Part shown: positions 1,292 through 62,965 of the stretch, one piece after another | Position numbering within the stretch: the first letter of the stretch is position 1 | Layout of the letters: each line of letters begins with the position of its first letter | Assembly (NCBI GenBank): GCA_977017575.1 | Contig: CDRNVI010000026.1 | Location: forward strand, 434,001 to 498,000 | Direction: 5' to 3' | Origin: Paramoeba atlantica | Lineage: Eukaryota > Protista > Discosea | Length of the DNA: 64,000 nt | Notes under the pieces: model-generated | Told to the model about the DNA's origin: nothing | The model's database searches: none | What the model saw: only the letters and a program-made list of their open reading frames with translations | Position numbers and translations under genes: made by a program

Positions 1292-1542
1292 GAACGATTA
1301 GGTCGAAAAACGGTGGTATACCAAATATTTCCAAAATCGGACAAAATACAAGACCTGTAGGGGGGGGGGGGTAAAAGACGCTGAACACCACTGTACAAGT
1401 ATGTATACTGCTATGTACATGTGTATTTCTCATTAACATAAGATTTACAATTTATTTCACAGGTTTCCATTTTTTTCTGCTTATCTCGCTCCTCCCGACA
1501 TAATTTCAACTGCTACTTCTCATTTACCCCCCTCTCATCCCC

Positions 1543-7874: not shown

Positions 7875-8082
7875 TACTGTGTGACCTTTTTTAAACTTCC
7901 TCCAGTTTCGGCAAAAACGAAGTATAAATGGGAGGACCTGAAATTTCCTCCTTTCTAAATACAGGCACATTCCGGCATCTTGTGTGCGTGAAAAATTAAC
8001 CGAGCTCAAAATATTTCCTCTTTTAACCCGGGGTCTGACCAGGTGCGCTTAAACGGAGGGGGAAAATTATTATTCTTTTCTT

Positions 8083-8350
8083 ATATTTGCGACAGGATGC
8101 CCCCTGGAGCCCTTCAGGGTCCAAAATTGTTTAGACAATATTATTATTTTCTTATATTTGCGACAGGATGCCCCCCTGGACCCTCTCAGGGTCCGAAATT
8201 GTTTAGACAATATTATTATTTTCTTATATTTGCGACAGGATGCCCCCTGGAGCCCTTCAGGGTCCAAAATTGTTTAGACAATATTATTATTTTCTCATAT
8301 TTGCGACAGGATGCCCCCCTGGACCCTCTCAGGGTCCGAAATTGTTTAGA
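8083..8350. repeat. Tandem repeat, 4 units alternating 71/72 bp
   Basis: ATATTTGCGACAGGATGCCCC starts at 8083, 8154, 8226 and 8297; the units alternate between two sequence variants. Confidence 0.9.
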
Positions 8351-8973
8351 CACGTTTTGAGCCACCGGAGTCCCTTTTATATTTTTTCTTTTATTCAACT
8401 GCTGCGGGTAATGATCTCGCATAATCTCACGTGATCTCGCATAATATCACGACCACATTAAAAGACATCTATCGTCGCTTCGCGGTACCTTTGTCGCTAC
8501 AATTCTGTCTGATCTTTATCATGATCTCACATGATCTTATCAGATCTTACGCGGTTTCGCATGACCTTACGTGATCTCGCGTGATCTCATTTAGACATTA
8601 CCTGCAGCCCCTCTATTATAATTATTCATTACTGTGTTTCTCTTTATAATTCCGCGTTTTTTGTTCACTTTTTATAATTAAGCAAGGGCTGATCAGAAGT
8701 GATACAACCACCGCTATCCTTAATTACCGCTACCTTAAACCACGACGTATCTTCCCGAATTCGTAATTCTAAAAAAATTGCTTTCGGGGTCATTCATTCG
8801 TGGGAGATATAATTATTATTGATCGTTTCATACTATCACTTGCGTTTATCGAAAACGGATGGAATAATTATTTACTGAACATTTTAAGGCGTACCACCAA
8901 TTAAAACCCTACTGAGCGATATTATTCAGTGGTTTATTCAGTTTCTTTTTCATTAGCTTCTTTGTTTTTGTAT

Positions 8974-10440
8974 ATGTCAGTGAGCTTCTCAACCGTTGTA
9001 CAAAAGCTTCGAGCCCAGCCGAATGCAGCAACGTCGGCACTGAATGACTACGTTGCACGACTAGCCCCCACTACGCTTACAAAACTTTCCAATGGATTTC
9101 AAGTCGCCAGCGAAAGCGCTGCTACGTTTCATCCGGACTTTGCGACCATAGGCGTTGTGCTGCAAGCCGGCAGTGCCTATGAGGGTCGCACTGAGAGCGG
9201 TGTTGCCTCAATGCTACAAAAGCTTTGTCTCGGCCGCGTGGGGAAGAAAACGCACGAGTCTCTGGCGCATGCCATTGAAGATGTAGGAGGTCACCTTAAA
9301 CTTTCCTCACAACGAGATCGTACATTGTTTTATTTCAAATGCCACAAATCGCAGCTGGAAAAAGCTGTTGCTCTGTTGGCCGAGATGGTTCGCTCTCCTT
9401 TGATCTCAGAAGAGGAGGTTGAGAAAGTTCGTACGCGCCAACTTCAGGAATTGAAGGAATTTGAGGAGGATCCGGATGGGATTATGATGGATAACCTGCA
9501 CACAGCCTGTCTCGACAGCACTGAGAGGGGTTACGGAGCGAAACCTAAGGGCACACTCGAGACAGTTCCGAAAATTACCTCATCAATGCTTGAGCAGTAT
9601 CACAGAGAGAACTGGACAGCTGGCCGTGCGATGCTCCTGGGGGTAGGCGGAGTGAATCACGCTCAACTCGAATCTTGGGCCTCCAAATATTTTAGTGATC
9701 TCCCCGAGAGTGGGCCCGCGCCACCGATTAACAGCCGCTACGTTGGAGGCGACATTAAGTTCTGGAACACGCGCATGAAGCTGACGCACTATGCCTGGGC
9801 TTTTGAGACTTGTGGTGCAGACTGTGGCGATGTCGTGCCATTGGAACTTGTGAATCATATTCACGGTCGTTTCCACCGCTCCCAACACGACCTCGTGCAG
9901 CACAGCAACCAGTTGAACTACAAGTGCTTCAGTGCGATGAATTTTTTGGTTCCCACATTACAGTACTTCAACGAAAAAGGTATCGAGATAGTAAATCCTT
10001 TCTTCCATTGCTACGAAGATGTGGGGCTCAGTGGTCTTCATTTGGTGGCGCGAACGGCTCAGACCCTCCCAGAGGTGACGTCAAATATCAGCGACTATGT
10101 CCAGCTTACGATGGGGGAGTACTGTCGCTTGACACAGAAAGCAATCCATGCGCGGGAACTGGAGCAAGCCAAGGTGAACTACAAGGTGCAGCTACTAATG
10201 AACCGGGATGGTCTCAGCAATCGTTTTGAGGACTTATCCAGGGAGCTGTTCTACGTGAAGCGCTCCGTCCCTGTGCAAGAAATGTTTGCTCGAATCGACG
10301 ACTTGACGCCAACTAACTTAATGGAGGTTTTGCAGCATTACTTCTACAGTCGACGACCTGTCCTATCATATACGGGATACGTCGCTGATACACCAGGGTA
10401 CGATCAAGTGACGCATTGGACATATAAATATTTATATTAA
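8974..10440 (+). CDS. M16 peptidase-family mitochondrial protein, non-catalytic (MPP-beta-like / complex III core-1-like)
   Basis: TKLSNGFQVASE, IGVVLQAGSAYE..ESGVASMLQKL (HXXEH zinc motif replaced), SRYVGGD and C-terminal M16 region. First ATG at 8974; the ORF track starts at an upstream GTG. Confidence 0.88.
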   Translation: MSVSFSTVVQKLRAQPNAATSALNDYVARLAPTTLTKLSNGFQVASESAATFHPDFATIGVVLQAGSAYEGRTESGVASMLQKLCLGRVGKKTHESLAHAIEDVGGHLKLSSQRDRTLFYFKCHKSQLEKAVALLAEMVRSPLISEEEVEKVRTRQLQELKEFEEDPDGIMMDNLHTACLDSTERGYGAKPKGTLETVPKITSSMLEQYHRENWTAGRAMLLGVGGVNHAQLESWASKYFSDLPESGPAPPINSRYVGGDIKFWNTRMKLTHYAWAFETCGADCGDVVPLELVNHIHGRFHRSQHDLVQHSNQLNYKCFSAMNFLVPTLQYFNEKGIEIVNPFFHCYEDVGLSGLHLVARTAQTLPEVTSNISDYVQLTMGEYCRLTQKAIHARELEQAKVNYKVQLLMNRDGLSNRFEDLSRELFYVKRSVPVQEMFARIDDLTPTNLMEVLQHYFYSRRPVLSYTGYVADTPGYDQVTHWTYKYLY

Positions 10441-10941
10441 ACTATTGCGAAAACAAAGTGACATTTAGGTCCATAAAAAGATGTTAAAATGTCTTCATTT
10501 ATTTGCGCATGTATGATCTTAAGTATAATCTGCACCCAGTGACTCGCTTAAGTAAATCACTAACCGGATTGAACATAACAAAATAAAGAAATTGTGTACT
10601 AGCCTACGGCATTCTTGATCGAACGTTCCACATAGTTTGTATAGTTCTTTCTATTTGAACCTTTTTCCATATTCTTTTATAAACTCCTCTCTCCTATACA
10701 AATTCATATTAAATGCATAAGTTGCACAATGATCAGAGCCTTTTCCTTTTTTATACAGCGATGAAATGCAGTAGAACATATATCTGTGGTTACTTGCAGA
10801 TTGAGATATGCGTACCACAATCATCAACAATGACCTAGAAATAACGGTGTTTAGTGTTTTTTTCGCTTTTTTAATTTGGTCGCACTTAATAGCAGCTCTT
10901 ACTATATGCTTTGTTGCTGTCTGCCTCTCTTTCTGCCTCTC

Positions 10942-11538
10942 ATGTCTTCAGATTCTGCACATCGCGTGCAACCGGCCAAAATTCGTGGTGTTACCTTACC
11001 GGAGGAATACGAACTCGCTCGATTGATTCAAAATATAGAAAACCCTCTCACCTCTTGGAACACACACACTCCTGCTTGTAGTTGGGAAAAAGTAGAGTGC
11101 AACTCGGAACAACAAGTTCTCAAGATCAATTGGTCGCTCACGAAATTACATGGGTCTCTTCATGCAGAGCATATTCCGAGACATTTGTATCGCTTTGACG
11201 TGTGGCACAATAAACTTCACGGAGCTTTCACTTTTGTAGCGCTCCCGTCCTCCCTCGTGCTCTTAGATCTTAGCAAGAATGCCTTTTCAGTAGCCCCTGA
11301 CCTAAGTCACCTACCACCCATGTTAAAGGAATTAATTTTGCGAGACAACCGTCTTGAGGGCTACGTAAATCTCTCATCTTTTCCAGTGTCTTTAACTCAT
11401 TTGTGGCTATACTCTAACCCTGAACTTGGGGGGGATTTAAATGTCGCAGTGCTTCCTCGAACGCTCGGGTACGATGTTAGAGATACGCAGATACGGGTAA
11501 CAAACGGACCTGACCATAGACGAGTTACAGATAACTGA
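10942..11538 (+). CDS. Short LRR protein, same family as 5241-7874
   Basis: PAKIRGVTLPEEYEL motif, W..H.PACSWEKVEC cap, ~4 LRR units; alternative ATG at 10906. Confidence 0.85.
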   Translation: MSSDSAHRVQPAKIRGVTLPEEYELARLIQNIENPLTSWNTHTPACSWEKVECNSEQQVLKINWSLTKLHGSLHAEHIPRHLYRFDVWHNKLHGAFTFVALPSSLVLLDLSKNAFSVAPDLSHLPPMLKELILRDNRLEGYVNLSSFPVSLTHLWLYSNPELGGDLNVAVLPRTLGYDVRDTQIRVTNGPDHRRVTDN

Positions 11539-12040
11539 ATGATAGCTAATCAATAATAGGACAAAATAAATGAACTCGTGAGTTGAATCTGTTTTATTAT
11601 ATCGACCTATGAGGGGCTATCCCCGGTGTGACCCCCCTCGGCTATCCCCCTCATGGGTTCCTGCTTGGAAAACTCTGGTGTGGGCGGAAAACTCTGATTT
11701 TCCGCCATTTTTAGGATCATTCAAAAGTCCAAAATTCTGCAAAACCTGCGTCCCTTTTTTTTGTTATTCAGGTCTTTTTACGACCTTATACGTCGGTACA
11801 GTCCACTGTTCTCTGACAATCGTACTTTCTCGATTTTTTTAGAAAAGTGAAAATATAGTTTTTTAATGAAATAAAGTAATTGAAGTACTTCATACTAACT
11901 TTATTCGCCAAAAAGAAAACCGTTTTTTTTACTTCATTGTAACTTATCGTTTCCGCGAACCCTGTTTTTTCATGCATCGCATGACTCGCATTATTACGCA
12001 TCATATTCCATTAGAACTCCTTTACGAATCTCACCCTCCC

Positions 12041-12895
12041 ATGTCCGACGGCAACACCGTGTTCATCGGTAACATCACCTCCCAGAGCGAGTCCGAGATC
12101 GAGTCCGCGCTGGCCCCGTTCGGGGAGATCACCAGCGTACGCCTGCGTGGGGCGTTTGCGTTCGTGGACTTCACCTCCCATGACAGCGCGGCGAAGGCCA
12201 TCGACAGCGTGACCACAATCGCGGATGGGGGCGTGCGGCTGGATTGGCCACGGCCGCGACGGGCTCCGGCAGCAGGAGGACCAGGGGGCGCTGCCGGGGG
12301 GAGAGGGTGCTTTAGCTGTGGAGAGGAGGGTCACCGTGCACGGGATTGCCCGAATGCCAGTCAGGGCAACAAGTGCTTCAACTGTGGCGGGTTTGGACAT
12401 ATCTCCCGGGAGTGTACAAAGGAGAAGGTGCCCCCGGGGGCGTGTTTTGTGTGTAAGGAGAGTGGGCACCGTGCGGCGGAGTGTCCGAACCGAGGAGGGG
12501 GGGATGATCGACGAGGGGGGAGTCCCGGAGGACGACGCGGTCGTAGCCGGTCGTACTCTCGTGGACGCTCGATTTCACGCTCTCCTCCTCGACGGGGATA
12601 CGGGAAGCGCGGGCGAGACTACGATAGCGTCAGTCGTAGTCGCAGCCGGGGTCATGGTCGCCGGGACAACCGCCGACGCTCGTACGATCGTGAGGACTCT
12701 TGCGACCGTCGCCGGGGCCGAGGACGACGGGAGGAACGAGGCAGGTACGAAAGTCGAAGCCGAAGTCGGAGCTACGGACGGCGCCGCAACGAGCGCAGTG
12801 AAAGCCCCCGTCGGGGACGAGGAGGAGGTCGCGAGCAGCGCAGTCCCCCACGACGACGCTATCGTGACGAAAGTGAAAGCCCACGTCGACGATAG
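12041..12895 (+). CDS. SR-like RNA-binding protein: RRM + 3 CCHC zinc knuckles + RS domain
   Basis: RNP2 VFIGNI, RNP1 GAFAFVDF; CFSCGEEGHRARDC, CFNCGGFGHISREC, CFVCKESGHRAAEC; RS-rich tail. Confidence 0.9.
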   Translation: MSDGNTVFIGNITSQSESEIESALAPFGEITSVRLRGAFAFVDFTSHDSAAKAIDSVTTIADGGVRLDWPRPRRAPAAGGPGGAAGGRGCFSCGEEGHRARDCPNASQGNKCFNCGGFGHISRECTKEKVPPGACFVCKESGHRAAECPNRGGGDDRRGGSPGGRRGRSRSYSRGRSISRSPPRRGYGKRGRDYDSVSRSRSRGHGRRDNRRRSYDREDSCDRRRGRGRREERGRYESRSRSRSYGRRRNERSESPRRGRGGGREQRSPPRRRYRDESESPRRR

Positions 12896-13474
12896 GTGGG
12901 TCAACTATAGAAAGAGATCAAAGTTGTACAAGGTTTAAAAAGAATTTAAAATTCTTAAAAAGAATTTAATATACATTGAGGAGAAAAAAAGTATCAATTT
13001 TTTTGGACATTTTTTTATACATTTTGAGGATAAAGTTAAAAAAAAATGAAACGAGAGATGAGCATACGCAGCACACACCAATTAACGAACTATCAGGCAT
13101 AGTTTACAATTTCGCGTTATATTGGTTATTCGTTGAATAATTAGCTTTTCCCTCAACTTATTACATATCGGTTCGAAATATTTTACATGGGCTCCCCAAG
13201 TTCCAGGGTAGGAACAAAGTAAGTAGGGGACTTGCTTGGAATATCATAAGCTTAATTATTGATTCGTCTTGTGGTACATCATGGTAATAGGCGTTACATG
13301 TACGATGAAATCAATCTCAAATTCTCTGTATCCGCTTTTATTTCGTATAATCCTAACACGGATTAAATACTTTTCGTTGCGAAGATGCACATACATGATG
13401 CACATCGCCTACAGGGCCTCTTTATTCTTTTACTACTTTTTGCTTAAAATCTAGTCTCTTTACAGTTTCCTTAC

Positions 13475-14146
13475 ATGAAGTCGTTAATTGAAATAACCTC
13501 TTCGGAGGACACATCTTCCGCTACTGGAAGATCCGCTCGCCCTGCCAAAGTGCGTGGCGCTGTGTTATCCCCGGAATTTGCTCTCATGCATTTCTTCGAA
13601 AATCCTCCTCATGGTTGGAGCGAGCAAAAAGTAATACGACACTGGCCTGGAATAGTCTGTAACAAGGCAGGTAAGGTAACGAAAATTACTGTTTTTGGTC
13701 AAGACCCGCATGGAGTGATGCGGTGGAATTACCTTCCCGAAAGCGTACGATCCTTAGAAGCGAGTTCGAACGGCTTGCAAGGCACTCTTGAACTCTCGCG
13801 CCTACCGTGGGATTTACGAAAACTTGACTTGAGCCATAACGTTCTAGTTGGCACGTTGGATCTATCGATGTTTCCGCAGTCCATGCATTACATTAACTTG
13901 GGGCATAACCAACTCCGTGGATCCCTCAACCTTGAATGCCTCTCTCCCGAGATGCGCTTCCTCGAGCTGCAACACAATGGATTTCACGGAGAGGTAAACT
14001 TAAACTGTCTTCCGAGAAGCATGCATCATCTTGGGTTATCTCATAATATTGAGCTTACTGGAGAGGTGAAAATGTGGAAACTCCCAAAAGGTCTTTGGTA
14101 CAATTGGGTAAAAACTGGCATCCGCGCCTATCCCGTGAATGTTTAA
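13475..14146 (+). CDS. Short LRR protein, same family
   Basis: RPAKVRG motif, W...HWPGIVC cap, ~5 LRR units. Confidence 0.85.
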   Translation: MKSLIEITSSEDTSSATGRSARPAKVRGAVLSPEFALMHFFENPPHGWSEQKVIRHWPGIVCNKAGKVTKITVFGQDPHGVMRWNYLPESVRSLEASSNGLQGTLELSRLPWDLRKLDLSHNVLVGTLDLSMFPQSMHYINLGHNQLRGSLNLECLSPEMRFLELQHNGFHGEVNLNCLPRSMHHLGLSHNIELTGEVKMWKLPKGLWYNWVKTGIRAYPVNV

Positions 14147-14583
14147 TGAGTAACGAATCAGTTCGCATAATCTTGCGCTACATTATGTAGCATAGGATTT
14201 ACTAGGATTATGTAACATCTTACTTAAATTGCATGTATTCTCAAGTTTTTCGCCAAGTCGCGTATATCGTAGTGTCCTATATCGTACAGCTCGCGGCAAT
14301 ACGAATCAATTTATTGTTCGTTCGTTTGATTCTTTGTTTGCGTTAGCTCATCTTATTTTCAGTGCTCCGTAAATCTACAAAGGTTCCATTACAGTACTAA
14401 ATTTTATAAGTTTTGAAATACGGCCCCTTAAAACTATATTGTTTAAACTTTTGTCTTCCTGTGTAGTTTATTCCATAAATCCTGTTTAAAAAATCAATCA
14501 CACGCTTCTCTCACACAAAAAAAATCATCTTTCTTTTTTTCCTTTTTTCCCTTTCCTTTCCTCCCCTTCCTTTTGTTTCCCTC

Positions 14584-15405
14584 ATGAGTGAGTCCGACGC
14601 CTCCGTGCTCCCCCACGACCCCTCCTCTCTGCTGTTCCTTGCGAAGCTCGCGGAGCAGACAGAGCGGTTCGAGGACATGGTGCGCTACGTGAAGGGGCTG
14701 GCCGCACTCAAGCCCGAGCTCTCCCCGGAGGAGCGCAATCTGCTCAGCGTGGCGTACAAGAATGTAATCGGGGCGCGACGTGCGGCATGGCGTGTGGTCG
14801 CGGCGGCGCTTACCCAACATGAGAGTGTTCTCCCCGAGGGGGAGAGTGGGGAGACCGAGGACGCCACGCGAACCGCACTGCGCGAGTATAAGTCCAGTAT
14901 TGAGTGTGAGGTCGGGGAGGTTTGTACCGATATTGTTACGTTACTGGAGGGTACGCTTCTCCCGGCGGTGGCGGAGGACGCCGAGACCCGAGTGTTCTAT
15001 CTCAAAATGGAGGGCGACTACTATCGTTACCATGCCGAGACGCTTGGCGAGGAGAAGGCAGATGCCCCGAAGCGTCACGCGTTGGAGGCGTACCGCACAG
15101 CCACGGAGCTTGCGGAACCTGTGTTGAGTCCAACTCACCCGATCCGTCTCGGTCTTGCTCTTAACTTTTCTGTCTTCTACTATGAAATTTTACATGACTT
15201 TGATAAAGGATGTGCTATGGCACAGAAAGCTTTTGATGACGCGTGCCCGGATCTTGAGTCTCTTGACGAGGAAAATTACAAAGAAAGTGCGTTGATTTTG
15301 CACCTACTCCGAGACAATTTGGCGCTGTGGAGAAACGAAGGCGAGGATGCCGAAAATAGCTCGGAAGGAAGTGATGCAAGCTCGCAAGCGGAAAACAGTC
15401 AATAA
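14584..15405 (+). CDS. 14-3-3: 14-3-3 protein
   Basis: LAKLAEQTERFEDM, EERNLLSVAYKNVIGARRAAWR, FYLKMEGDYYRY, PTHPIRLGLALNFSVFYYEI, LLRDNLALW. Confidence 0.97.
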   Translation: MSESDASVLPHDPSSLLFLAKLAEQTERFEDMVRYVKGLAALKPELSPEERNLLSVAYKNVIGARRAAWRVVAAALTQHESVLPEGESGETEDATRTALREYKSSIECEVGEVCTDIVTLLEGTLLPAVAEDAETRVFYLKMEGDYYRYHAETLGEEKADAPKRHALEAYRTATELAEPVLSPTHPIRLGLALNFSVFYYEILHDFDKGCAMAQKAFDDACPDLESLDEENYKESALILHLLRDNLALWRNEGEDAENSSEGSDASSQAENSQ

Positions 15406-15832
15406 GTCACTTCCGCTTTCTTTATTTTCCTAGAAAACGAGATTTACATAGAATCTTTATCTGAACACAAACTTTGTTCGCTAAAACGAAAATGAGAAAG
15501 TTTGTCATGGCATTTCGTATTTTGTTTCGTAAATTCTTTTTTCACTTTGGAACTGTGTAGACCTATGCCCTCAGAATAGTGTGCAAATCATACGCGTGGT
15601 CGCATTATGTAAACTGAAAATTTTAAATTCTAAAATTCATTTCTATCCTCGTAAGTTGCCAACATTGGCAGGCTTTCTATTTTCTTAATTAACCGGAACA
15701 CTCCTACAAAGAACTACCTGTACTAAACTCTAGACTAAAGTACAGAACTAACTTTCTCATAGTTATAATTTAGTAGTGTATGTCGCTTCATGTAGGCAAG
15801 GAAGCTAGTCATTTTACTTCTTTTTTATTTCT

Positions 15833-16642
15833 ATGAATTTGCTTTCTCGAACGTCAGACATTTCCGCTCTTCGCCCTTCCAAAGTGCGAGGCGCATTCAT
15901 GCCAGCAGAAGTATGTCTTGATCGTTTTCTTCGAAATGTGACAAACCGGCCGAAATCTTGGACAACAGATTACGACGCGTGCATGTGGGAATGTGTAGAT
16001 TGTAACAGCAGGCGGGAGGTGTTTCGCTTGCGCTGGCAATTTCAACGGCTTGCGGGAACTCTTTCCTGGGCTGACCTTCCCCCCACACTTTCAAAATTAA
16101 ATTTGGGTAGCTTTGAGCATCACACCAACAACCTTTCTGGCACAGTTTCATTCAACTCTTTTCCGCGCGGCATACGCTCACTGCTTCTGGGATATAATGA
16201 ATTCAGCGGCAATCTGAACACTGAGCACTTTCCAACGACGCTAGAAAAACTCGATGTGGAGGAGAATTCTTTTGACGGCTCAATAGCCCTTGAAACTTTG
16301 CCTCTCTCCATGCAAGCAATGGATGTAGGGGGGAATTTTTTGTCCGGTAGTTTGAATTTAACGATGCTTCCCATGTTAGCCTCATTGGGGCTTGCGATAA
16401 ATCGATTTACAGGGTGCATCGACCTGACGCAACTTCCAAAAACTCTTCTGGAACTTCATTTGCATGAAAATCGTCTATGTGGAACAATTGATCTTACTTC
16501 TTTGCCACCGAAGTTAGAGTACTTGCATTTAGACACCAATGAGTTTACAGGTATTGTAGATGCTCGTTCAGTACCTTCGTCGTTGGTGTATCTCAGCCTT
16601 GAAGAAAATAATTTTTCATCTATTCAAGGTAATGTATTATAG
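15833..16642 (+). CDS. LRR protein, same family
   Basis: RPSKVRG motif, W....DACMWECVDC cap, ~7 LRR units. Confidence 0.87.
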   Translation: MNLLSRTSDISALRPSKVRGAFMPAEVCLDRFLRNVTNRPKSWTTDYDACMWECVDCNSRREVFRLRWQFQRLAGTLSWADLPPTLSKLNLGSFEHHTNNLSGTVSFNSFPRGIRSLLLGYNEFSGNLNTEHFPTTLEKLDVEENSFDGSIALETLPLSMQAMDVGGNFLSGSLNLTMLPMLASLGLAINRFTGCIDLTQLPKTLLELHLHENRLCGTIDLTSLPPKLEYLHLDTNEFTGIVDARSVPSSLVYLSLEENNFSSIQGNVL

Positions 16643-17464
16643 GCATCTCATCCAATATTCTTATAACAGGGGTGCAAATCTGATACAGGAGACGTCAGAA
16701 AAATGGCACTTTTACTTAATTTCGGAAATTCATGGCGTGCATTTGAATTCGCACAGCTTTGTATATTCGCACACCTTTGTATGTTTCGGGAGAAGAGGTT
16801 TCCGTGAAATTCACTTACCGTGACCCACCCCCTAACTAGATACATCGGAACATACGTTGTTCTGGGAACTGTTCTTCGTTCTGCGAGAATGAGAACGACG
16901 CTCTGTGTGTCCACTCTGCATGAAATCATGTAAAATGTAATGTAAAATGTAATAATGTAATGTCATGTAATAATGCAAAACATATCTAAAAAATTGCCAA
17001 GGAGTCTTACGTTCTTTTTCTTCTTTTCTCATCACTAATAGAATTTTCTACTTTACTCATGGCTCAAGGCTTTTAGCACACTCAACACGTTGGTATACAA
17101 GCTTGTGGTCCAATAGCCTTTGAATAATGTCCCTTTCGCTTGTCGCTGCCAAAACTGTGTATGACCAATTGTCGGTACAAGAAAAATCTGTGCACTGCCG
17201 ACAATTTATGTCCAAAGTAGCCAAAAGTTTTGGCTTCTTTCCACCTTTTTGAAAAAGGTGGAAAAGTATCAGATTAACTGATGTATTTGCTTCAAAATGA
17301 GTCTTTAGAATAATTATGACTCTTTTTCAAAAAAATTTAAACTTTGGCGCAAAACCGGTTCCCTTTCATTAATGATTTAATAAATTTAATTTTGAAATTT
17401 ATAAGCGTGTTTCGTAGGTAGGAATGAAACATTACTCAGTGAATACAACATCTATGCTTGACGG

Positions 17465-25936: not shown

Positions 25937-28900
25937 GGCACTTCCGCCGGCAGAAGAGGTTACAGTTCAAGTGTATTGATTTATGTATTGAGTTCGGTGG
26001 GGTGTAGCAAAAATCCATTATTTCATAGATGGAAGGTCATGAAAGTGAAGGATGAAGATAGGTGGAAGGTCAGTAGGAATATGTGGTTCACCGACGGGAA
26101 TGGGTGTAAGCATAAAAACGCGAGAGGAGTGTTCTGGGGGGAAAGGTGGAGAAGAAATCTCAACCGGTATGCTCTTTAGCCGAGAAGTGCAACATAAAGT
26201 TGGAATTGCAACAGAAAGGTGAACGACAACGACGTGCTACTAATAATTTTTGAAGACATTCATGATTTTTGCGATTGCACTTAAAGGAAGGACATGTTAT
26301 ATTAAGTTTTTTAGTAAGTGCCAACTTTACTGAGTAGTGACTAACTTTACGTTTTTTATGCATAAAACTGAAAATGGGGTATACGTCAAAGAGAGGAAAT
26401 TCAACCCTTTGACTTAACGTCAAAAACCGAAAAAGAGGGAAAAGTCAGGGGGGGGGGGAGATCAGTCAGGGAGGAAGTGTAGCGTTGATGAAGGTGCAGA
26501 GTCGTGCGTATTTTTTAACCTTTGAAGACAAAATTAGGAACCTAATCTTTAATTTATCCTTTACGTATTCCTTTAACTACTGTTTTTACGAAATGTTTCT
26601 TAAAAAGCGAATTCTCCTTTGCCTCAACGGATTACAGAGGAACATTTTCCGCATTCTCAAAGCCGTCTACTTCTATTCGCGAATCTCTATTCGGACATTT
26701 ACGTCCTCTCTTTTTTCTAGCATCCTCTTTTGCGCGAAGCTCGCCCATTATCTCATCATGCGACTTCACGTCCTCCACGCATTCCTTGTAGCAAAGTCTG
26801 TTCTGATACGCAACCCGTAACTGATTAAAATCTCGAGGAAATCTATACTGGTCCTCATTTTCTTTGACCACGGAGCTGAATCTTGATAAAACTTTCGGCC
26901 AAGGTATGTGCCTCGAAGATTTGTCGCGCACTTCATCGATGACACATTGCAGGAGCAAGCGCACTTCAAGGAGATTGAATTTCACGATCACGTTTCTTTG
27001 GCGAGGATCAATTCTTGGAGCATGTAAATGTGTTGCCAGGTGACATGCGTTGCTATTTCCTGTCGCGGTAAAATGTTGTACAGGTAAGTCATCAACCATT
27101 ATGATCTCGTGCGCCCCCAAACCTACATCAAAATCTGTATCAAAAGTTTTAAATATTCTTGCACCAGGGATATCAAGTACGCAAACACCGCATATTCTGT
27201 GCCTCTGCGGAGTTGGTGATACGGAATCGAAAGGAACTACTAGATATGGTACGTGTGAAAGCTCGTGCAGAACGAGTACAGTGCTTGAAATGACATTGGC
27301 AAGAGAGCGAACTAGGGGAAGAAATAATTGCCAGTGCGAGACCTTGGTTATAACTTCCTCGACGTCATTCTCGGGCTTGCTCAAGTGTTCAAGAACTCGT
27401 TCGAACGTCGTATCTTTGTCCACCCGCGATGTATCGCACCGCAGAATACAGGGATCTCCCGCACACAAGTATTCAAGTGTGCTCATCATTGACGCTGCGG
27501 TGCACTCTCCACCTAGGAAACGCACCTTTTCCTCGTGCTTAGTTGGTGTAGCAGAAAGTGCGAAGTTAAATTCCACATCGTCTTTGCCAAGAAATACGGG
27601 CTCGCAACCAAACTTATTTTGCGCCCAGCTGCGAACATTACTCAGCTGATTGTCAGACAAGGAATGCGGGATAAGTGCATATCCATCCCCAGATTCAACA
27701 GGGTGAACATATTGTGTGAAGAACAGTTCATGAGTCGTTAGTTGTTTCGCCACAGGGAGAAGTCCAAATGGACTATTACATAATCTTGCATCGTCCGCCC
27801 CCAGGAAGAGAGAAGAGAAGGTTTCTTTCAAGGTTCGAAACAACAGAGCGTCGAAACACATCATATCCGGCGCTGATTTGAATCTCACAGCACATTTCAC
27901 ATTACTTCGATAAATAAAGCTCCTTGTCAGCGCGTCTACAGTTTCTGCTGAGCTACGCGCGCGAAGCTTCACTTTAGCTTTCAAACGAGAATAAAAACTT
28001 TCACAAATGTTGGTTCCTCGGCTGGAACGATACACCATATTCTTATCCACGCGCGTCAAATTCACATCTGTAGGGTCACTGAGGCAGTCCCGCTCGATGT
28101 GGGCTATTGCGTACGGCCAGAGAGAAGCTAACTTGGGGTTCCATGTAAAGATGTCCGAATATTTTTCCTTCAGGAGTTCCATTTTAGAAAGCAATTTTGC
28201 CGGACGTGGAATAACTTTCTCATGCGCATCAAGATGTTCCTTTTTTGACAAAGCGATAGTAAGAGGCTCTACTACAGATCGGCAAAGCTCGGTGTAAAAC
28301 ATTTTCTGCCGATTTGATGCTGAAGTGCGTGGGATAACAGCTGCGAAACGGTGCAGCCAATGCCATAAATCGCATTTAATATGTGCAGATGGAAAGTGGC
28401 GTTGTATTTTAGAACGCACTGTGCAACAGTTGTCAACATATATAACCATTGCTTTGCTTCCTGGACGTGATGCTATGTTTGAAAGAACATTGTGCAAAGT
28501 GTCAAAACTTTCATTTCGAGTATATACGGCAGCCAAAATCTCACCAATTTCATTGTGAACAACAAAGTGAGAACGAAACGGTGCTTCCCCACGCAGTCGA
28601 ATGCACTTTGCGGTCTCGAAAGTATGATCCGTTGCAAGCACTGTACCAGTCAGCTCGGACATATAGTTGTCACACTCCACCTGGCGCTGCTGGAGTAATG
28701 AAATCAAAACATCCTGAAAATGATCCACTGATGGAGTCATCCATTCTTGTGAAATTCGATTTGAAATCGCTTCCACGCAATTAGGATCCCAGCGAAATTC
28801 AAATTTTTCCGTGTGCTTTAATTCAAAAATGTGTCTTTCATCGCGCTTATTACTCAGATACTGCAACGTCCGCTGATGGTAATCGACGGCATACACTTCT

Positions 28901-30010
28901 TGCAGAATACCTTGAAATTCACTCATATTAGAACCACTAGATCCTATTGCCATAATGGCCGTTGAAAGTCGTCTAGTCATCCCCAATTTTTCAGTTTTAA
29001 TATTAGGAAAGGAATTTCGTGCCTTGTGGGACAGGCTGGAAATTAAGCTCTTTTCATCACTTGATATTACCTTACGACACTCAGTGCTACGACATTGATA
29101 CACTTCACAAAGATAGTACATTGGTGTCGAAAGATCAAAAATCCGACGCACAGGAGAAAGCTTCATGAAAGTCAACCGCTCTTTGCAATGAAGACAGTGT
29201 AGGCTTTCTTTTTCGCCTTGGCGCATGGGCGCCCATATGATCCATGGCAAGGTAAAAAGCGTTTCCAATGAACTCCTAGGCTCCGGAGAAAAGAACCAAA
29301 GGGAAGTACATGTAGTTTTTGTTTTTAATTCTTCGTATGCCCTTCGAATTGCCGTGACTTGATGTGAAGACATTCCTGTTTCGAGCAAATGCGTCCAGTA
29401 TTTTGTCACTTCTGTTCGTTCGTGTGTGGTTTCTTCTGGGCGAGAAGCGAACCGACAAAGCTCCGAATTTTCGGCTACTACACGCGAAAGGGTGGTTGAA
29501 AGTTCGTTGTTCCTTTTTTCCATTTCCTCAATTTGTGTTTCTAGCTTTTTGATGCTTCCCGTAAGTTGCTTCTTTTCCTTGGCCATTGTTTGGATGACGT
29601 TCAGTAGGTCCGTTTCACAAGACATGACTTAAATAATCAGAAATCTAGAAATGATTTTTAGAGTACCAGGAAGGTTCAATAGTTTTGTTTGTAAAGTGAT
29701 CATCTTGAACAGTCAGGGTACAATAGCTGAGGCTTTAAACTCTCAAATATGTACTAGAAATCGTTTCTGGGAAAACAATTTTGACGAAATTAAAAAATTA
29801 TTGGACTACAAAAAAATTAGGTATGAAGTTCAGACTCAATAGTACACAACTTTCATAGGAACTATTAAGTTCAGACTCAATAATAGAAACACACTTCAGT
29901 TACTATTGAGTTTACTATTGAGTTTTAGCAATCCAGATGCGTGCAACTCAATAGAGAACTCACTAGTGACTCTTCAACCCAATAGTTGCTGTCACTATGG
30001 CGGAACTAAC
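25937..30010 (-). mobile_element. Mutator-like DNA transposon, 4074 bp, 8-bp TSD AGTGTGAC, short imperfect TIRs
   Basis: AGTGTGAC at 25929-25936 and 30011-30018; termini GGCACTTCCGCC and (rc) GTTAGTTCCGCC. Confidence 0.85.
26632..29625 (-). CDS. 997-aa DDE transposase (MULE-like, D-x2-H type)
   Basis: LATDHTF (D), IYVDNCC (D), CDLWH (C/DxxH), GTNICESFYSRLK (E); N-terminal coiled coil and Cys cluster; uninterrupted ORF. Confidence 0.8.
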   Translation of the reverse strand: MSCETDLLNVIQTMAKEKKQLTGSIKKLETQIEEMEKRNNELSTTLSRVVAENSELCRFASRPEETTHERTEVTKYWTHLLETGMSSHQVTAIRRAYEELKTKTTCTSLWFFSPEPRSSLETLFTLPWIIWAPMRQGEKESLHCLHCKERLTFMKLSPVRRIFDLSTPMYYLCEVYQCRSTECRKVISSDEKSLISSLSHKARNSFPNIKTEKLGMTRRLSTAIMAIGSSGSNMSEFQGILQEVYAVDYHQRTLQYLSNKRDERHIFELKHTEKFEFRWDPNCVEAISNRISQEWMTPSVDHFQDVLISLLQQRQVECDNYMSELTGTVLATDHTFETAKCIRLRGEAPFRSHFVVHNEIGEILAAVYTRNESFDTLHNVLSNIASRPGSKAMVIYVDNCCTVRSKIQRHFPSAHIKCDLWHWLHRFAAVIPRTSASNRQKMFYTELCRSVVEPLTIALSKKEHLDAHEKVIPRPAKLLSKMELLKEKYSDIFTWNPKLASLWPYAIAHIERDCLSDPTDVNLTRVDKNMVYRSSRGTNICESFYSRLKAKVKLRARSSAETVDALTRSFIYRSNVKCAVRFKSAPDMMCFDALLFRTLKETFSSLFLGADDARLCNSPFGLLPVAKQLTTHELFFTQYVHPVESGDGYALIPHSLSDNQLSNVRSWAQNKFGCEPVFLGKDDVEFNFALSATPTKHEEKVRFLGGECTAASMMSTLEYLCAGDPCILRCDTSRVDKDTTFERVLEHLSKPENDVEEVITKVSHWQLFLPLVRSLANVISSTVLVLHELSHVPYLVVPFDSVSPTPQRHRICGVCVLDIPGARIFKTFDTDFDVGLGAHEIIMVDDLPVQHFTATGNSNACHLATHLHAPRIDPRQRNVIVKFNLLEVRLLLQCVIDEVRDKSSRHIPWPKVLSRFSSVVKENEDQYRFPRDFNQLRVAYQNRLCYKECVEDVKSHDEIMGELRAKEDARKKRGRKCPNRDSRIEVDGFENAENVPL

Positions 30011-37972: not shown

Positions 37973-40900
37973 GGCACTTCCGCCGGCAGAAGAGGTTACA
38001 GTTCAAGTGTATTGATTTATGTATTGAGTTCGGTGGGGTGTAGCAAAAATCCATTATTTCATAGATGGAAGGTCATGAAAGTGAAGGATGAAGATAGGTG
38101 GAAGGTCAGTAGGAATATGTGGTTCACCGACGGGAATGGGTGTAAGCATAAAAACGCGAGAGGAGTGTTCTGGGGGGAAAGGTGGAGAAGAAATCTCAAC
38201 CGGTATGCTCTTTAGCCGAGAAGTGCAACATAAAGTTGGAATTGCAACAGAAAGGTGAACGACAACGACGTGCTACTAATAATTTTTGAAGACATTCATG
38301 ATTTTTGCGATTGCACTTAAAGGAAGGACATGTTATATTAAGTTTTTTAGTAAGTGCCAACTTTACTGAGTAGTGACTAACTTTACGTTTTTTATGCATA
38401 AAACTGAAAATGGGGTATACGTCAAAGAGAGGAAATTCAACCCTTTGACTTAACGTCAAAAACCGAAAAAGAGGGAAAAGTCAGGGGGGGGGGGAGATCA
38501 GTCAGGGAGGAAGTGTAGCGTTGATGAAGGTGCAGAGTCGTGCGTATTTTTTAACCTTTGAAGACAAAATTAGGAACCTAATCTTTAATTTATCCTTTAC
38601 GTATTCCTTTAACTACTGTTTTTACGAAATGTTTCTTAAAAAGCGAATTCTCCTTTGCCTCAACGGATTACAGAGGAACATTTTCCGCATTCTCAAAGCC
38701 GTCTACTTCTATTCGCGAATCTCTATTCGGACATTTACGTCCTCTCTTTTTTCTAGCATCCTCTTTTGCGCGAAGCTCGCCCATTATCTCATCATGCGAC
38801 TTCACGTCCTCCACGCATTCCTTGTAGCAAAGTCTGTTCTGATACGCAACCCGTAACTGATTAAAATCTCGAGGAAATCTATACTGGTCCTCATTTTCTT
38901 TGACCACGGAGCTGAATCTTGATAAAACTTTCGGCCAAGGTATGTGCCTCGAAGATTTGTCGCGCACTTCATCGATGACACATTGCAGGAGCAAGCGCAC
39001 TTCAAGGAGATTGAATTTCACGATCACGTTTCTTTGGCGAGGATCAATTCTTGGAGCATGTAAATGTGTTGCCAGGTGACATGCGTTGCTATTTCCTGTC
39101 GCGGTAAAATGTTGTACAGGTAAGTCATCAACCATTATGATCTCGTGCGCCCCCAAACCTACATCAAAATCTGTATCAAAAGTTTTAAATATTCTTGCAC
39201 CAGGGATATCAAGTACGCAAACACCGCATATTCTGTGCCTCTGCGGAGTTGGTGATACGGAATCGAAAGGAACTACTAGATATGGTACGTGTGAAAGCTC
39301 GTGCAGAACGAGTACAGTGCTTGAAATGACATTGGCAAGAGAGCGAACTAGGGGAAGAAATAATTGCCAGTGCGAGACCTTGGTTATAACTTCCTCGACG
39401 TCATTCTCGGGCTTGCTCAAGTGTTCAAGAACTCGTTCGAACGTCGTATCTTTGTCCACCCGCGATGTATCGCACCGCAGAATACAGGGATCTCCCGCAC
39501 ACAAGTATTCAAGTGTGCTCATCATTGACGCTGCGGTGCACTCTCCACCTAGGAAACGCACCTTTTCCTCGTGCTTAGTTGGTGTAGCAGAAAGTGCGAA
39601 GTTAAATTCCACATCGTCTTTGCCAAGAAATACGGGCTCGCAACCAAACTTATTTTGCGCCCAGCTGCGAACATTACTCAGCTGATTGTCAGACAAGGAA
39701 TGCGGGATAAGTGCATATCCATCCCCAGATTCAACAGGGTGAACATATTGTGTGAAGAACAGTTCATGAGTCGTTAGTTGTTTCGCCACAGGGAGAAGTC
39801 CAAATGGACTATTACATAATCTTGCATCGTCCGCCCCCAGGAAGAGAGAAGAGAAGGTTTCTTTCAAGGTTCGAAACAACAGAGCGTCGAAACACATCAT
39901 ATCCGGCGCTGATTTGAATCTCACAGCACATTTCACATTACTTCGATAAATAAAGCTCCTTGTCAGCGCGTCTACAGTTTCTGCTGAGCTACGCGCGCGA
40001 AGCTTCACTTTAGCTTTCAAACGAGAATAAAAACTTTCACAAATGTTGGTTCCTCGGCTGGAACGATACACCATATTCTTATCCACGCGCGTCAAATTCA
40101 CATCTGTAGGGTCACTGAGGCAGTCCCGCTCGATGTGGGCTATTGCGTACGGCCAGAGAGAAGCTAACTTGGGGTTCCATGTAAAGATGTCCGAATATTT
40201 TTCCTTCAGGAGTTCCATTTTAGAAAGCAATTTTGCCGGACGTGGAATAACTTTCTCATGCGCATCAAGATGTTCCTTTTTTGACAAAGCGATAGTAAGA
40301 GGCTCTACTACAGATCGGCAAAGCTCGGTGTAAAACATTTTCTGCCGATTTGATGCTGAAGTGCGTGGGATAACAGCTGCGAAACGGTGCAGCCAATGCC
40401 ATAAATCGCATTTAATATGTGCAGATGGAAAGTGGCGTTGTATTTTAGAACGCACTGTGCAACAGTTGTCAACATATATAACCATTGCTTTGCTTCCTGG
40501 ACGTGATGCTATGTTTGAAAGAACATTGTGCAAAGTGTCAAAACTTTCATTTCGAGTATATACGGCAGCCAAAATCTCACCAATTTCATTGTGAACAACA
40601 AAGTGAGAACGAAACGGTGCTTCCCCACGCAGTCGAATGCACTTTGCGGTCTCGAAAGTATGATCCGTTGCAAGCACTGTACCAGTCAGCTCGGACATAT
40701 AGTTGTCACACTCCACCTGGCGCTGCTGGAGTAATGAAATCAAAACATCCTGAAAATGATCCACTGATGGAGTCATCCATTCTTGTGAAATTCGATTTGA
40801 AATCGCTTCCACGCAATTAGGATCCCAGCGAAATTCAAATTTTTCCGTGTGCTTTAATTCAAAAATGTGTCTTTCATCGCGCTTATTACTCAGATACTGC

Positions 40901-42046
40901 AACGTCCGCTGATGGTAATCGACGGCATACACTTCTTGCAGAATACCTTGAAATTCACTCATATTAGAACCACTAGATCCTATTGCCATAATGGCCGTTG
41001 AAAGTCGTCTAGTCATCCCCAATTTTTCAGTTTTAATATTAGGAAAGGAATTTCGTGCCTTGTGGGACAGGCTGGAAATTAAGCTCTTTTCATCACTTGA
41101 TATTACCTTACGACACTCAGTGCTACGACATTGATACACTTCACAAAGATAGTACATTGGTGTCGAAAGATCAAAAATCCGACGCACAGGAGAAAGCTTC
41201 ATGAAAGTCAACCGCTCTTTGCAATGAAGACAGTGTAGGCTTTCTTTTTCGCCTTGGCGCATGGGCGCCCATATGATCCATGGCAAGGTAAAAAGCGTTT
41301 CCAATGAACTCCTAGGCTCCGGAGAAAAGAACCAAAGGGAAGTACATGTAGTTTTTGTTTTTAATTCTTCGTATGCCCTTCGAATTGCCGTGACTTGATG
41401 TGAAGACATTCCTGTTTCGAGCAAATGCGTCCAGTATTTTGTCACTTCTGTTCGTTCGTGTGTGGTTTCTTCTGGGCGAGAAGCGAACCGACAAAGCTCC
41501 GAATTTTCGGCTACTACACGCGAAAGGGTGGTTGAAAGTTCGTTGTTCCTTTTTTCCATTTCCTCAATTTGTGTTTCTAGCTTTTTGATGCTTCCCGTAA
41601 GTTGCTTCTTTTCCTTGGCCATTGTTTGGATGACGTTCAGTAGGTCCGTTTCACAAGACATGACTTAAATAATCAGAAATCTAGAAATGATTTTTAGAGT
41701 ACCAGGAAGGTTCAATAGTTTTGTTTGTAAAGTGATCATCTTGAACAGTCAGGGTACAATAGCTGAGGCTTTAAACTCTCAAATATGTACTAGAAATCGT
41801 TTCTGGGAAAACAATTTTGACGAAATTAAAAAATTATTGGACTACAAAAAAATTAGGTATGAAGTTCAGACTCAATAGTACACAACTTTCATAGGAACTA
41901 TTAAGTTCAGACTCAATAATAGAAACACACTTCAGTTACTATTGAGTTTACTATTGAGTTTTAGCAATCCAGATGCGTGCAACTCAATAGAGAACTCACT
42001 AGTGACTCTTCAACCCAATAGTTGCTGTCACTATGGCGGAACTAAC
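37973..42046 (-). mobile_element. Duplicate Mutator-like element (transposase CDS 38668-41661) inside the duplicate, 5'-truncated IS30 ORF
   Basis: Identical translation and TSDs at +12,036; IS30 C-terminal part at 42055-42510. Confidence 0.85.
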
Positions 42047-51235: not shown

Positions 51236-51432
51236 AATGATCTTCCAGAAAAACTCTTCCTTCTAAATGCGGAAGCCAACCATTTTCATGGTACGCTATG
51301 TTTATTGAATCTCCCGCCTTTGTTAGCAGAACTCACTTTGAATAATAACATATTTAAAGGTCCTTTAAATCTTAGCAGTCTACCGCTCACTCTTACGTCT
51401 TTAAATTTGAACGGCAACCTCCTCAATGGTAT
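51236..51432 (+). pseudogene. Captured fragment of a host 23-aa LRR gene (nearly 3 repeats)
   Basis: NDLPEKLFLLNAEANHFHGTLCLLNLPPLLAELTLNNNIFKGPLNLSSLPLTLTSLNLNGNLLNGI follows the family consensus; flanked on both sides by the 18-bp repeat. Confidence 0.85.
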
Positions 51433-51467
51433 AACAAAGGTCTTCAAAAAAACAAAGGTCTTCAAAA

Positions 51468-52240
51468 ACCCAATGTTTTCGATGGTTTACGGCCCCATGG
51501 CGCCATTCCCGATTTAGACACTTGCTGGCACCAGCGCAGTCCGTATATATTTGGCAACGGGAGTTCTTGGCAAGATGGCACACATGAGCGGTCATAGTGG
51601 CAGCATCTGTGCTTTCCAGGTACTTTACAAATATCTCTTTCATGGGATAGTGTATGCGACCTTCTTCATCTGGTATCTCATCGCAGTGTACCAAAGTATG
51701 GTACCAAGAGGAACCATCGCGTCGGACTCTTTTCCCTCGACCGCACCCCATTCGCTTGATCCGGGAAACGCACGTTTCGTCCTTTTGCATGAAAAGAACT
51801 GTGCCCTGTGAAGCGTCGAAGCGCATGTCGTGCGCAGTGCTAACAATGTATTCGAAGAATTGAAACAATTCGACAATTGTAAACTTGCCAAGAGTGCATT
51901 CGCGGGAAACTTGTTGAATGGACATACCCTCGATGAGACCGTACAACACGATGAGTGTGTCCTTAATACTTCGTTTGCTTTTTAAATTGAATAAGGGTTC
52001 CATCGCACTGTAACGTGCTCTACACTCTGTAGTTTCCACGTAAGGACAATACCAATGGGAACCATCATGTACACACATGATTTCCTTGGTGTCATGATAC
52101 TTGACTTTGAGGCACCACACCTGCTGGGCAACAAGTTTGTGATTCTTGAACCAACGTGATAAAAGTTCTTCAGTGCTGTCCGCAAAACTGGAGAAAGAGA
52201 TGCTCTTTATACATTCGAACTTCTCACACCCCTCGCAAAA
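51468..52240 (-). pseudogene. Merlin transposase N-terminal/core part
   Basis: QKDET..K...GRG (D), IYTDC (D), HGAVNH; frame open up to a TAG at 52241-52243; the 5' end is replaced by the 19-bp-motif repeat. Confidence 0.85.
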
Positions 52241-52398
52241 CTAATTCACTGTATTTTGTGACATGATTAGACGGCTATGCAAGATTCCTATACTTATGCA
52301 ATATTCCTATACTTCCACCGATGACTACAACGCCAAAATTCGTTTCGATGAGTACTCATCCAAACTACAACACCAGTGTCCATAATACAGTACGCAAA

Positions 52399-52471
52399 AG
52401 CCACATCCGAGGATCGAACTCGGGACCTCCGTCTTACTAGGACGGCGCTCTAACCACTGGGCTAATGCGGC
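52399..52471 (-). tRNA. tRNA-Thr(AGT)
   Basis: Cloverleaf GCCGCAT..ATGTGGC, anticodon arm CCGTC-CTAGTAA-GACGG, TTCGA T-loop. Confidence 0.93.
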
Positions 52472-52546
52472 ACTTTAAATGTGGACTGTCAACTTGGTGT
52501 GGAAGAATTCCTCCTTAAGAGAGATAGGTAGCGCACAATATTTGCA

Positions 52547-52618
52547 GGGGGCTTAGCTCAGAGGTAGAGCACCGGATTCCAAATCCGATGGTCGCAGGTT
52601 CAATCCCTGCAGTCCTCA
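52547..52618 (+). tRNA. tRNA-Trp(CCA) with a C27:A43 mismatch (4-bp anticodon stem)
   Basis: GGGGGCT TA GCTC AGAGGTA GAGC A CCGGA TTCCAAA TCCGA TGGTC GCAGG TTCAATC CCTGC AGTCCTC A. Confidence 0.93.
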
Positions 52619-52672
52619 TTTCCGACTTTTCATATCAAACGAGTTTATAGGTTACGTGCATAGACAGGAAGT

Positions 52673-52753
52673 GCGCTCATACCCAAGTGGTTAAGGGGCC
52701 TGACTAGAAATCAGGTGTGTTCTCACGCGTAGGTTCGAATCCTGCTGAGCGCG
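52673..52753 (+). tRNA. tRNA-Ser(AGA)
   Basis: Anticodon arm CCTGA-CTAGAAA-TCAGG, long variable arm, G73. Confidence 0.93.
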
Positions 52754-52810
52754 TTTTCGCTGCGTTAGCGATTTTACCACGTTGCATCTCCGTTTACGCT
52801 CGGCACCCGC

Positions 52811-52883
52811 GGGGGTGTAGCTCACATGGTAGAGCGTGCGCTTAGCATGCGCGAGGCACTGGGATCGATACCCAGCATCTCCA
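52811..52883 (+). tRNA. tRNA-Ala(AGC)
   Basis: G3:U70 pair, anticodon loop TTAGCAT. Confidence 0.93.
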
Positions 52884-52939
52884 TTTCGCTTCCACAACAA
52901 ATTTGAGTCCTCATCAGTGATTGTCTATCGAGGATAATC

Positions 52940-53012
52940 GGGCGTGTAGCTCAGTTGGCAGAGCGCTCGATTCGCATTCGAGAGGCCTAGGGTTCGATTC
53001 CCTACCCGTCCA
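52940..53012 (+). tRNA. tRNA-Ala(CGC)
   Basis: G3:U70 pair, anticodon arm CTCGA-TTCGCAT-TCGAG, T-tract terminator downstream. Confidence 0.92.
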
Positions 53013-53380
53013 TTTTTAGCTTTCCTGGCTCTCGCGTTAAAAGCGGTGGGTACTTCCACCGGAGTCTGTGCAACGGCACTAGCACTATTACCTGTCATGA
53101 ATTCATCTTATCTTCTTGTCTTACAGTAACTCCAAAAAGTGTTCAAATGTTTCGACATTCTTTAATGTTTTATTTTTTTAGCAAAGAGAATCAAAGGATA
53201 ATGCTGTAGTAGGTGGAAGTAACGGACTTTTGCAGAAGTCCTTTTTTGACCACCAACCTCTTGTTACTGTACCCCTCCCCTACTTATACCGTTACCCCTC
53301 CTAGTTATCCAAGTACGCTACTTATCCAAAAAATCGGGTAATTTTTGGAAAACTTATCCAACTTTTTGACACGAAGTCAT

Positions 53381-61802: not shown

Positions 61803-62965
61803 TCAAAGGAGGACCGATGCATTTTTCCTGCCCATTGCGATGGCCGTGGTCTCGTTTATCCCTGAGTATCGTAGTAGAGTACTGAGATGCTTGTGGTTTG
61901 CAATTCTCATGACATGCTCGAGTTCCACTTTCCCCTGAGCCATGTACCGCATCAGCGTACGTACTGCTCCGTGCTTGATTGAGTGGGAAGAGAATGCGTT
62001 GCCGAACTTGGCCCGAAGAAACTGTGTTACTTGCATTGTTGTCACTGGAGCCACCTTTTGCCGCGGGCGAAGGTGACGAATATAATCGTAAATCTCTTGT
62101 AAATACTTTCCCTCGATCACTACGAAGCTGTCTGGGCGGTAAGGCTGATTTTTGTCGTTTTGGTTTTGCGCCCCCAGTAAATGACTATTCTGGTCGGAGT
62201 TAACAGTATGAAATCTTGTCTTGTTAGGTTCGCCACTTCTCCAATTCGTGAAGCTGTTTTGTATGCGATTTTTACGACCGCAGCCACATCGAAGGGCACG
62301 GTCCGAACAGCGAGTTCGAGATTCCAAGGTGATATTGGCTCCGCTTGATGTATTGGTTCTGCTGCCCCTTGTCTCGTTAAGACCTTTGCGTACATCTCGG
62401 CTCTGTGAGGTTTTGCATCGATCTCCTTCAAAACTGACATTAAATGGCTTAAGTACGTTCTTTTTGTTTGTATCGACACATCCAGGGATCTGATATAAGA
62501 GACGATACCCTCGTCGTTTAAGGCATAATTTTTTGTGCTCAGGCCCCTTAGCAGACGTATCCTTGTCTCCCATGTTCTGGGTGTCCAACAATTTTTTAAA
62601 TCATCGCGTGTCGTTTCGCTCTTTGCCTTCAAGACGTGCTTCAGAAAATAGTCTGCCTTTTTGTCTCATGATTCCGTCATTGCTGGAATTAATACGTTCA
62701 GATGATCTACTTGCGATACTTTCGTTCGGACAAGCGTTGAATAAGATGGCCGGAATCTTCGAGCTACAGGAGCGCAACTGTTGACCTGTGACGTTTTGAT
62801 AATTTCCGTGGTTTTTTTCTTTTTCTGTTCTCTCAGAGACATATTTTCCGTATGTTGCGCTGTTTCCCGTTTTGTGATTTCTATTTGCTGGACGTGGTTT
62901 GCCGATGTTATTAGATGTGCATTGTTTGTTCGCGTTGCTGGACACGTTTCCTGGGGGAGAGTCAT
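61803..62965 (-). mobile_element. Tyrosine recombinase of VIPER/TATE (DIRS-order) type, frameshifted
   Basis: TASRIGE (R), KTKT (K), then a one-base frameshift in an A-run near 62150 into HSIKHGA, ANHK and LRY. The frame extends upstream through a TGA at 62666-62668. Confidence 0.8.

Follow-up and report, generated by a model that had tools for sequence, protein, structure and literature searches.

A tRNA-Trp(CCA) gene with a four-base-pair anticodon stem at a locus where UGA is a working stop codon

Whether a 4-bp anticodon stem in tRNA-Trp is enough for UGA to be read as tryptophan, or whether a change in the release factor eRF1 is needed alongside it, is a matter of debate, and nearly all eukaryotes so far found to carry a short-stem tRNA-Trp do read UGA as Trp. 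The locus described here touches directly on this debate. In the window, by which is meant the whole 64,000-nucleotide stretch of contig CDRNVI010000026.1 that was analysed, lies a tRNA-Trp(CCA) gene with such a stem. Is UGA a sense codon, a stop codon or something in between in the organism that carries this gene (hereafter the host)?

The tRNA-Trp(CCA) gene and its surroundings

Five tRNA genes were located by ARAGORN at 52399-53012 and all were confirmed by Rfam, with tRNA-Thr on the minus strand and the other four on the plus strand. The genes, and the parts of the tRNA-Trp gene discussed below, are as follows:

52399..52471, minus strand: tRNA-Thr(AGU), anticodon stem of 5 bp, CCGTC/GACGG
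52547..52618, plus strand: tRNA-Trp(CCA), acceptor stem of 7 bp (two G.U), D stem of 4 bp, T stem of 5 bp (ARAGORN, Rfam/Infernal and fold)
52572, plus strand: C27, 5' side of the open top pair of the anticodon stem (sequence; Infernal flag)
52579..52581, plus strand: anticodon CCA, with C34 at 52579 (ARAGORN)
52588, plus strand: A43, 3' side of the open top pair; G in T. brucei (sequence)
52619..52631, plus strand: T-runs 3' of the tRNA-Trp gene (TTT and, 8 nt further, TTTT), probably a terminator for Pol III (sequence)
52672..52754, plus strand: tRNA-Ser(AGA), anticodon stem of 5 bp, CCTGA/TCAGG
52811..52883, plus strand: tRNA-Ala(AGC), anticodon stem TGCGC/GCGCG with U27.G43 as its top pair
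52940..53012, plus strand: tRNA-Ala(CGC), anticodon stem of 5 bp, CTCGA/TCGAG

The tRNA-Trp gene is 72 nt long and obtains the best Rfam RF00005 score of the five, 66.5 bits, and its minimum-energy fold is the cloverleaf, at -27.1 kcal/mol. The sole non-standard pair in the Infernal alignment is the first pair of the anticodon stem. Direct reading of the arm as CCGGA / UUCCAAA / UCCGA likewise places C27 opposite A43, above four pairs that are all standard and a 7-nt loop, UUCCAAA. The shortened stem with C27 facing A43, which a first-pass annotation had described, is thus confirmed by both routes, and the same annotation was right to state that the other four tRNAs of the cluster are paired at all five stem positions, one of them via a G:U pair. 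In all other respects the gene is intact. Tryptophan identity is of the eukaryote type, with G1:C72 and discriminator A73, and the internal promoter boxes are good (A box TAGCTCAGAGG, B box GGTTCAATCCC). A9 and G24 are both kept, so that the classical UGA-suppressor changes, A9C and G24A (Hirsh), are absent. The computed energy cost of C.A relative to C:G in the anticodon arm is about 2.3 kcal/mol. A possible A26-U44 pair flanks the C27.A43 opposition, and given this pair the anticodon helix may be loosened rather than frayed.

Within the cluster the tRNA-Trp gene stands beside A34-type tRNAs, and the stretch around the cluster is rich in transposons. In the interval 51401-52471, a LINE on the minus strand, whose ORF extends to 52240, has its 5' end some 160 bp downstream of tRNA-Thr(AGU), which has the same orientation. 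Insertion aimed at the vicinity of Pol III genes, of the kind seen with the TRE elements of Dictyostelium, could account for this position. Exact look-ups of two transposon ORFs adjoining the tRNA cluster found no ENA counterpart. Elsewhere in the window, a DUF6729 domain is present in two 997-aa ORFs of identical sequence (26632-29625 and 38668-41661, minus strand), which are part of a tandem repeat of about 12 kb.

Support for the base at position 43 was sought in sequencing runs as assembled into Logan contigs, a form in which rare variants, copy number and expression are invisible. Contigs from two runs, X1 and X2 (two samples of one study), cross 52340-53260 unbroken. The X2 contig is identical to the window at a depth of 66, X2 possibly being itself the source of the window DNA, and the X1 contig (depth 7.6) agrees at 199 of 200 compared bases, the position of the single difference not being listed. 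That one difference is the point in favour of reading A43 as a sequencing or assembly error; with both contigs speaking against it, the probability of such an error is regarded as close to negligible. In a third sample, a 109-nt Logan contig of run X4 agrees with 52498-52578, which takes in sequence upstream of the tRNA-Trp gene and the gene itself down to U33; its remaining 28 nt are unrelated and occur nowhere in the window. This contig could stem from a structural variant, from a second copy that has been disrupted or from an artefact of the assembly graph.

Lineage of the host and comparison with known short-stem tRNAs

The aspartyl-tRNA synthetase (AspRS) encoded in the window has Perkinsela as its best named match, at 49% identity. 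In a maximum-likelihood tree built from AspRS alone, the window protein is sister to Perkinsela together with two Perkinsela-like metagenome contigs (support 98/94), and this grouping lies within a fully supported clade that is separate from the trypanosomatids. Judged by this protein phylogeny, the host is a kinetoplastid related to Perkinsela and far from Blastocrithidia, whose position is inside the trypanosomatids, beside Obscuromonas with its canonical code and 5-bp stem. Introns are absent from the host genes, which follow one another on a single strand in one long array. Positions 1-12501 of the window are identical to the ENA metagenome contig ERZ24900291 ctg3982l (114,751 bp), and from 12502 on the two are separated by SNPs and indels; on account of this divergence the window is taken to represent the locus in a second haplotype or in a different assembly version. 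The same gene array also contains, on the contig upstream of the window (L125, 2949-6626), a full-length gene for the UPF1 helicase (1225 aa), a protein relevant to the handling of transcripts with premature or read-through stops.

The Blastocrithidia-like class of 4-bp-stem tRNA-Trp is defined by an open top pair, a 7-nt loop and the retention of A9 and G24 (PMC13092985), and the host tRNA-Trp(CCA) has every one of these features. The opened pair of B. nonstop is written 26C.42U, in the raw numbering of a 72-nt tRNA (PMC13092985); since this tRNA lacks position 17, it is the same pair as C27:A43. The structural analogy to Blastocrithidia that had been drawn from the host sequence therefore holds, with the same pair 27:43 open in both. 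As far as Kachale 2023 is relayed in PMC12153298 and PMC13092985, the Blastocrithidia gene is likewise a kinetoplastid nuclear tRNA-Trp(CCA) with 27:43 open and the 5' C kept, and it shares with the host gene the 7-nt loop and the lack of both the Hirsh change (G24A) and A9C. The opposition itself is C.U in Blastocrithidia and C.A in the host. Moreover, Blastocrithidia is in these accounts a trypanosomatid in which UGA=Trp and translation stops only at UAA, whereas the host is a Perkinsela relative with UGA as a stop and no in-frame TGA. Trypanosomatids described so far, Blastocrithidia aside, have 5-bp stems.

The sole comparator sequence for the host tRNA was the 3' half of the T. brucei tRNA-Trp(CCA), as given by a primer in the literature that is complementary to positions 73-35 (PMC8677022). 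Of the 39 positions from 35 to 73, 33 are identical in the two tRNAs, which share their T arm and discriminator. The T. brucei gene is single-copy and its product dual-targeted (PMC8677022). Where T. brucei has A42 G43 G44, within a stem described as 5 bp (PMC8677022), the host has G42 A43 U44. By analogy, the T. brucei tRNA is the likely functional counterpart of the host tRNA, import and C34 editing included. Position 43, which is G in T. brucei, has changed to A in the host and to U in B. nonstop, and the two short-stem lineages are distant; on these grounds the host short stem probably arose independently of that of Blastocrithidia.

Outside the eukaryotes, about 2% of bacterial tRNA-Trp(CCA) genes are Blastocrithidia-like, and the most frequent open pair in the class is C:A, at 35% (PMC13092985). 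Among standard-code bacterial genomes, 6.5% have a 4-bp-stem tRNA-Trp(CCA) as their only one. In our own tolerant pattern scan of JGI metagenomes, 120 tRNA-Trp genes were recovered, all of them bacterial, with the 27:43 pair Watson-Crick in 116, G.U in one and open in three. Open 27:43 pairs are uncommon, not rare. The standard-code bacterial class answers to the same formal definition as the host tRNA, has C:A as its commonest opposition and coexists with UGA stops (PMC13092985), whereas the host is eukaryotic, terminates translation in an eRF1-dependent manner and belongs to a lineage that imports tRNA-Trp into the mitochondrion. A strict tRNA-Trp pattern gave no match in JGI metagenomes, and a kinetoplastid-specific 3'-half pattern gave none in genome_contigs or viral_contigs. 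Likewise, no tRNA was found near AspRS in the two Perkinsela-like ENA contigs or in the 43 kb upstream on the host contig, and a literature search with the anticodon-arm string and T. brucei 3'-end strings returned no further sequence.

Among eukaryotes, those in which a short-stem tRNA is the only tRNA-Trp all read UGA as Trp, namely Blastocrithidia, Condylostoma, Blepharisma, Loxodes and Amoebophrya. Paramecium biaurelia resembles the host in being a eukaryote that has a short-stem tRNA-Trp(CCA) gene and uses UGA as a stop (bioRxiv 10.1101/2023.10.09.561518); there, the short-stem gene is one of eight tRNA-Trp genes (bioRxiv 10.1101/2023.10.09.561518). The host gene could be a minor or silent copy, with a canonical 5-bp tRNA-Trp elsewhere in the genome doing the work. 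Room for such an arrangement is left by the genome portion covered here, which is only about 107 kb, by the transposon-rich setting of the cluster and by the observation that the region is contained in no RNA run. Conversely, the gene has the top tRNA score in the window and a cloverleaf that is otherwise perfect, and tRNA-Trp genes number one to three per kinetoplastid. The unbroken Logan contigs of two runs are suggestive in the same direction, as such contigs would tend to be interrupted if a nearly identical copy with different flanks existed. On both sets of observations, a minor or silent copy is considered unlikely.

UGA in the genes of the host

The use of UGA was assessed in a gene array obtained by joining the 43 kb upstream on the ENA contig to window positions 1-17200, which together span about 60 kb and contain 30 ORFs. 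Two of the TGA-terminated ORFs lie within the window:

525-1115: TGA-terminated host ORF, the second of the two in the window
10906..11538, plus strand: host LRR gene, TGA-terminated

The 30 ORFs end in TAA (12), TAG (12) and TGA (6), and in 12,923 codons they contain 145 TGG and zero in-frame TGA, a small sample, in which readthrough at the level of a few percent would go unseen. If 5% of the Trp codons were TGA, the chance of observing none would be 6e-4. The ends of conserved domains bear on the same point. In one TGA-terminated gene the PTH2 Pfam profile is matched over 2-115 of its 115 positions, with its end at the final residue before TGA, and in another the NAD synthase profile is matched to position 240 of 242, five residues ahead of TGA. 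Since these two profiles end at or near the TGA, UGA is a real terminator. The host nuclear code is standard, with UGA a working stop in the array genes, and for the 30 array genes nuclear reassignment of UGA, whether complete or incipient in the form of in-frame use, is excluded.

The first-pass annotation had counted a single TGA stop among nine host genes, a figure that was roughly right but too low, the count being 2/10 in the window and 6/30 in the array. Of the leaky or incipient UGA-to-Trp readthrough that it went on to propose, incipient reassignment is not supported, given the six TGA stops, the domains ending at TGA and the 145 TGG set against no in-frame TGA. Among the features associated with recoding of UGA to Trp of the Blastocrithidia/Condylostoma type is a change of eRF1 Ser to Gly or Ala at yeast position 67 (human 70); the host eRF1 gene lies outside the portion of the genome covered. 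As regards its marks at the codon level, the 30 ORFs have no in-frame UGA and have kept UGA as a terminator.

Two indirect signs of unusual UGA behaviour were also considered and rejected. Avoidance of TGA as a stop is not apparent, the share of 6/30 (20%) being no different from one third (binomial p = 0.17); in Perkinsela-like loci taken for comparison TGA stops number 3/14 and 8/13, and 20% falls within this spread. Nor is there a backup-stop signal behind TGA, as the backup stops in the array ORFs are no closer behind TGA than behind TAA/TAG (p = 0.72).

Possible roles of the short stem

One alternative is that the short stem has a functional effect and makes UGA readthrough frequent enough to be of consequence, whether because the host is at an early ambiguous stage on the way to UGA = Trp or because programmed readthrough draws on it, for instance in retrotransposons of the VIPER type. 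One candidate site lies at the right end of the window:

63097-63091, minus strand: gag stop of a VIPER-type retrotransposon, UGA CUA G, a single UGA before the recombinase frame

Here the gag frame closes with a UGA (63097-63095, minus strand) that has CUA G directly behind it, and beyond this stop a recombinase-like ORF follows in the same frame. UGA-CUA-G is a context known as a strong readthrough signal in other eukaryotes, and a tRNA-Trp with a short stem would be the obvious candidate for decoding this UGA, a connection that is put forward as a lead only. A second in-frame TGA is present inside the recombinase-like ORF, at 62666-62668 (minus strand). Readthrough is further favoured by reporter experiments, reported in PMC13092985 among other sources, in which unpinning of 27:43 in tRNA-Trp boosted UGA decoding in yeast (about 7-fold), T. 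brucei and E. coli, and by simulations in which the G43A (C:A) variant behaved like the tested G43U (PMC13092985). However, the reporter effects came from overexpressed tRNA (PMC13092985), and in the 30 ORFs of the array TGA makes up 20% of the stops, in-frame TGA is absent and backup stops are no closer. Readthrough at a level that matters is judged improbable. A similarly low probability is given to a more specific scenario, in which all tRNA-Trp(CCA) of the host would be of the short-stem form, of an origin independent of Blastocrithidia, and would mark a pre-reassignment stage where raised readthrough is checked by a normal eRF1 and already used to make a VIPER Gag-recombinase fusion.

The stem could also be restored in the mature tRNA. 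Were C27 deaminated to U, or A43 to inosine, the stem would regain its fifth pair, either already in the cytosol or not until the tRNA has been imported into the mitochondrion. Kinetoplastids do deaminate their tRNAs: C34 of mitochondrial tRNA-Trp is edited from C to U, and tRNA-Thr is deaminated via ADAT2 (PMC8677022). An arm with U27:A43 would moreover be stable, at -4.1 kcal/mol as against -3.2 kcal/mol for the present arm forced into five pairs. To our knowledge, on the other hand, editing at 27 or 43 occurs in no kinetoplastid, which counts against repair, and this reading is held to be very unlikely. Still less credence is given to the notion that the imported, unedited CCA tRNA reads mitochondrial UGA by virtue of its short stem, such that C34-to-U editing would be unnecessary. 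By analogy with Blastocrithidia, in which cytosolic UGA is read by a tRNA of this shape, the notion is plausible in principle only. The property would, however, act in the host cytosol too, where TGA clearly terminates genes.

The explanation that we favour, and consider reasonably probable, is that the gene encodes a working nuclear tRNA-Trp of a Perkinsela relative, in which a Blastocrithidia-like short stem is tolerated while the standard code is kept and UGA remains a stop. The gene would be transcribed by RNA polymerase III, and a G-to-A change at position 43, as judged against T. brucei, would have left C27 opposite A43 and thereby four standard stem pairs. The product would serve as the cell's working tRNA-Trp and read UGG. 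Mitochondrial import is probable as well, as in other kinetoplastids, with editing of C34 allowing UGA to be read inside the organelle; this supposition is drawn from the lineage and from PMC8677022. In the cytosol, the open pair would at most raise near-cognate reading of UGA, with a normal release factor still outcompeting the tRNA. UGA ends about one gene in five, and the short-stem shape alone would be insufficient for reassignment. Counted in favour of a tolerated short stem are the precedents under the standard code, in bacteria (6.5%) and in P. biaurelia. Counted against it are the roughly 7-fold increase in UGA readthrough that a short stem produced in yeast, and the consideration that, among eukaryotes, exclusive reliance on a short-stem tRNA-Trp under the standard code would be exceptional.

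The finding is not evidence of a new genetic code. Rather, the host tRNA-Trp is a new, probably independent eukaryotic member of a known short-stem class. A second kinetoplastid lineage that combines this shape with UGA as a stop would be a natural control for Blastocrithidia. Such a control would argue that the tRNA change can precede recoding and be tolerated, and the contribution of eRF1 would become directly testable inside one group of organisms.
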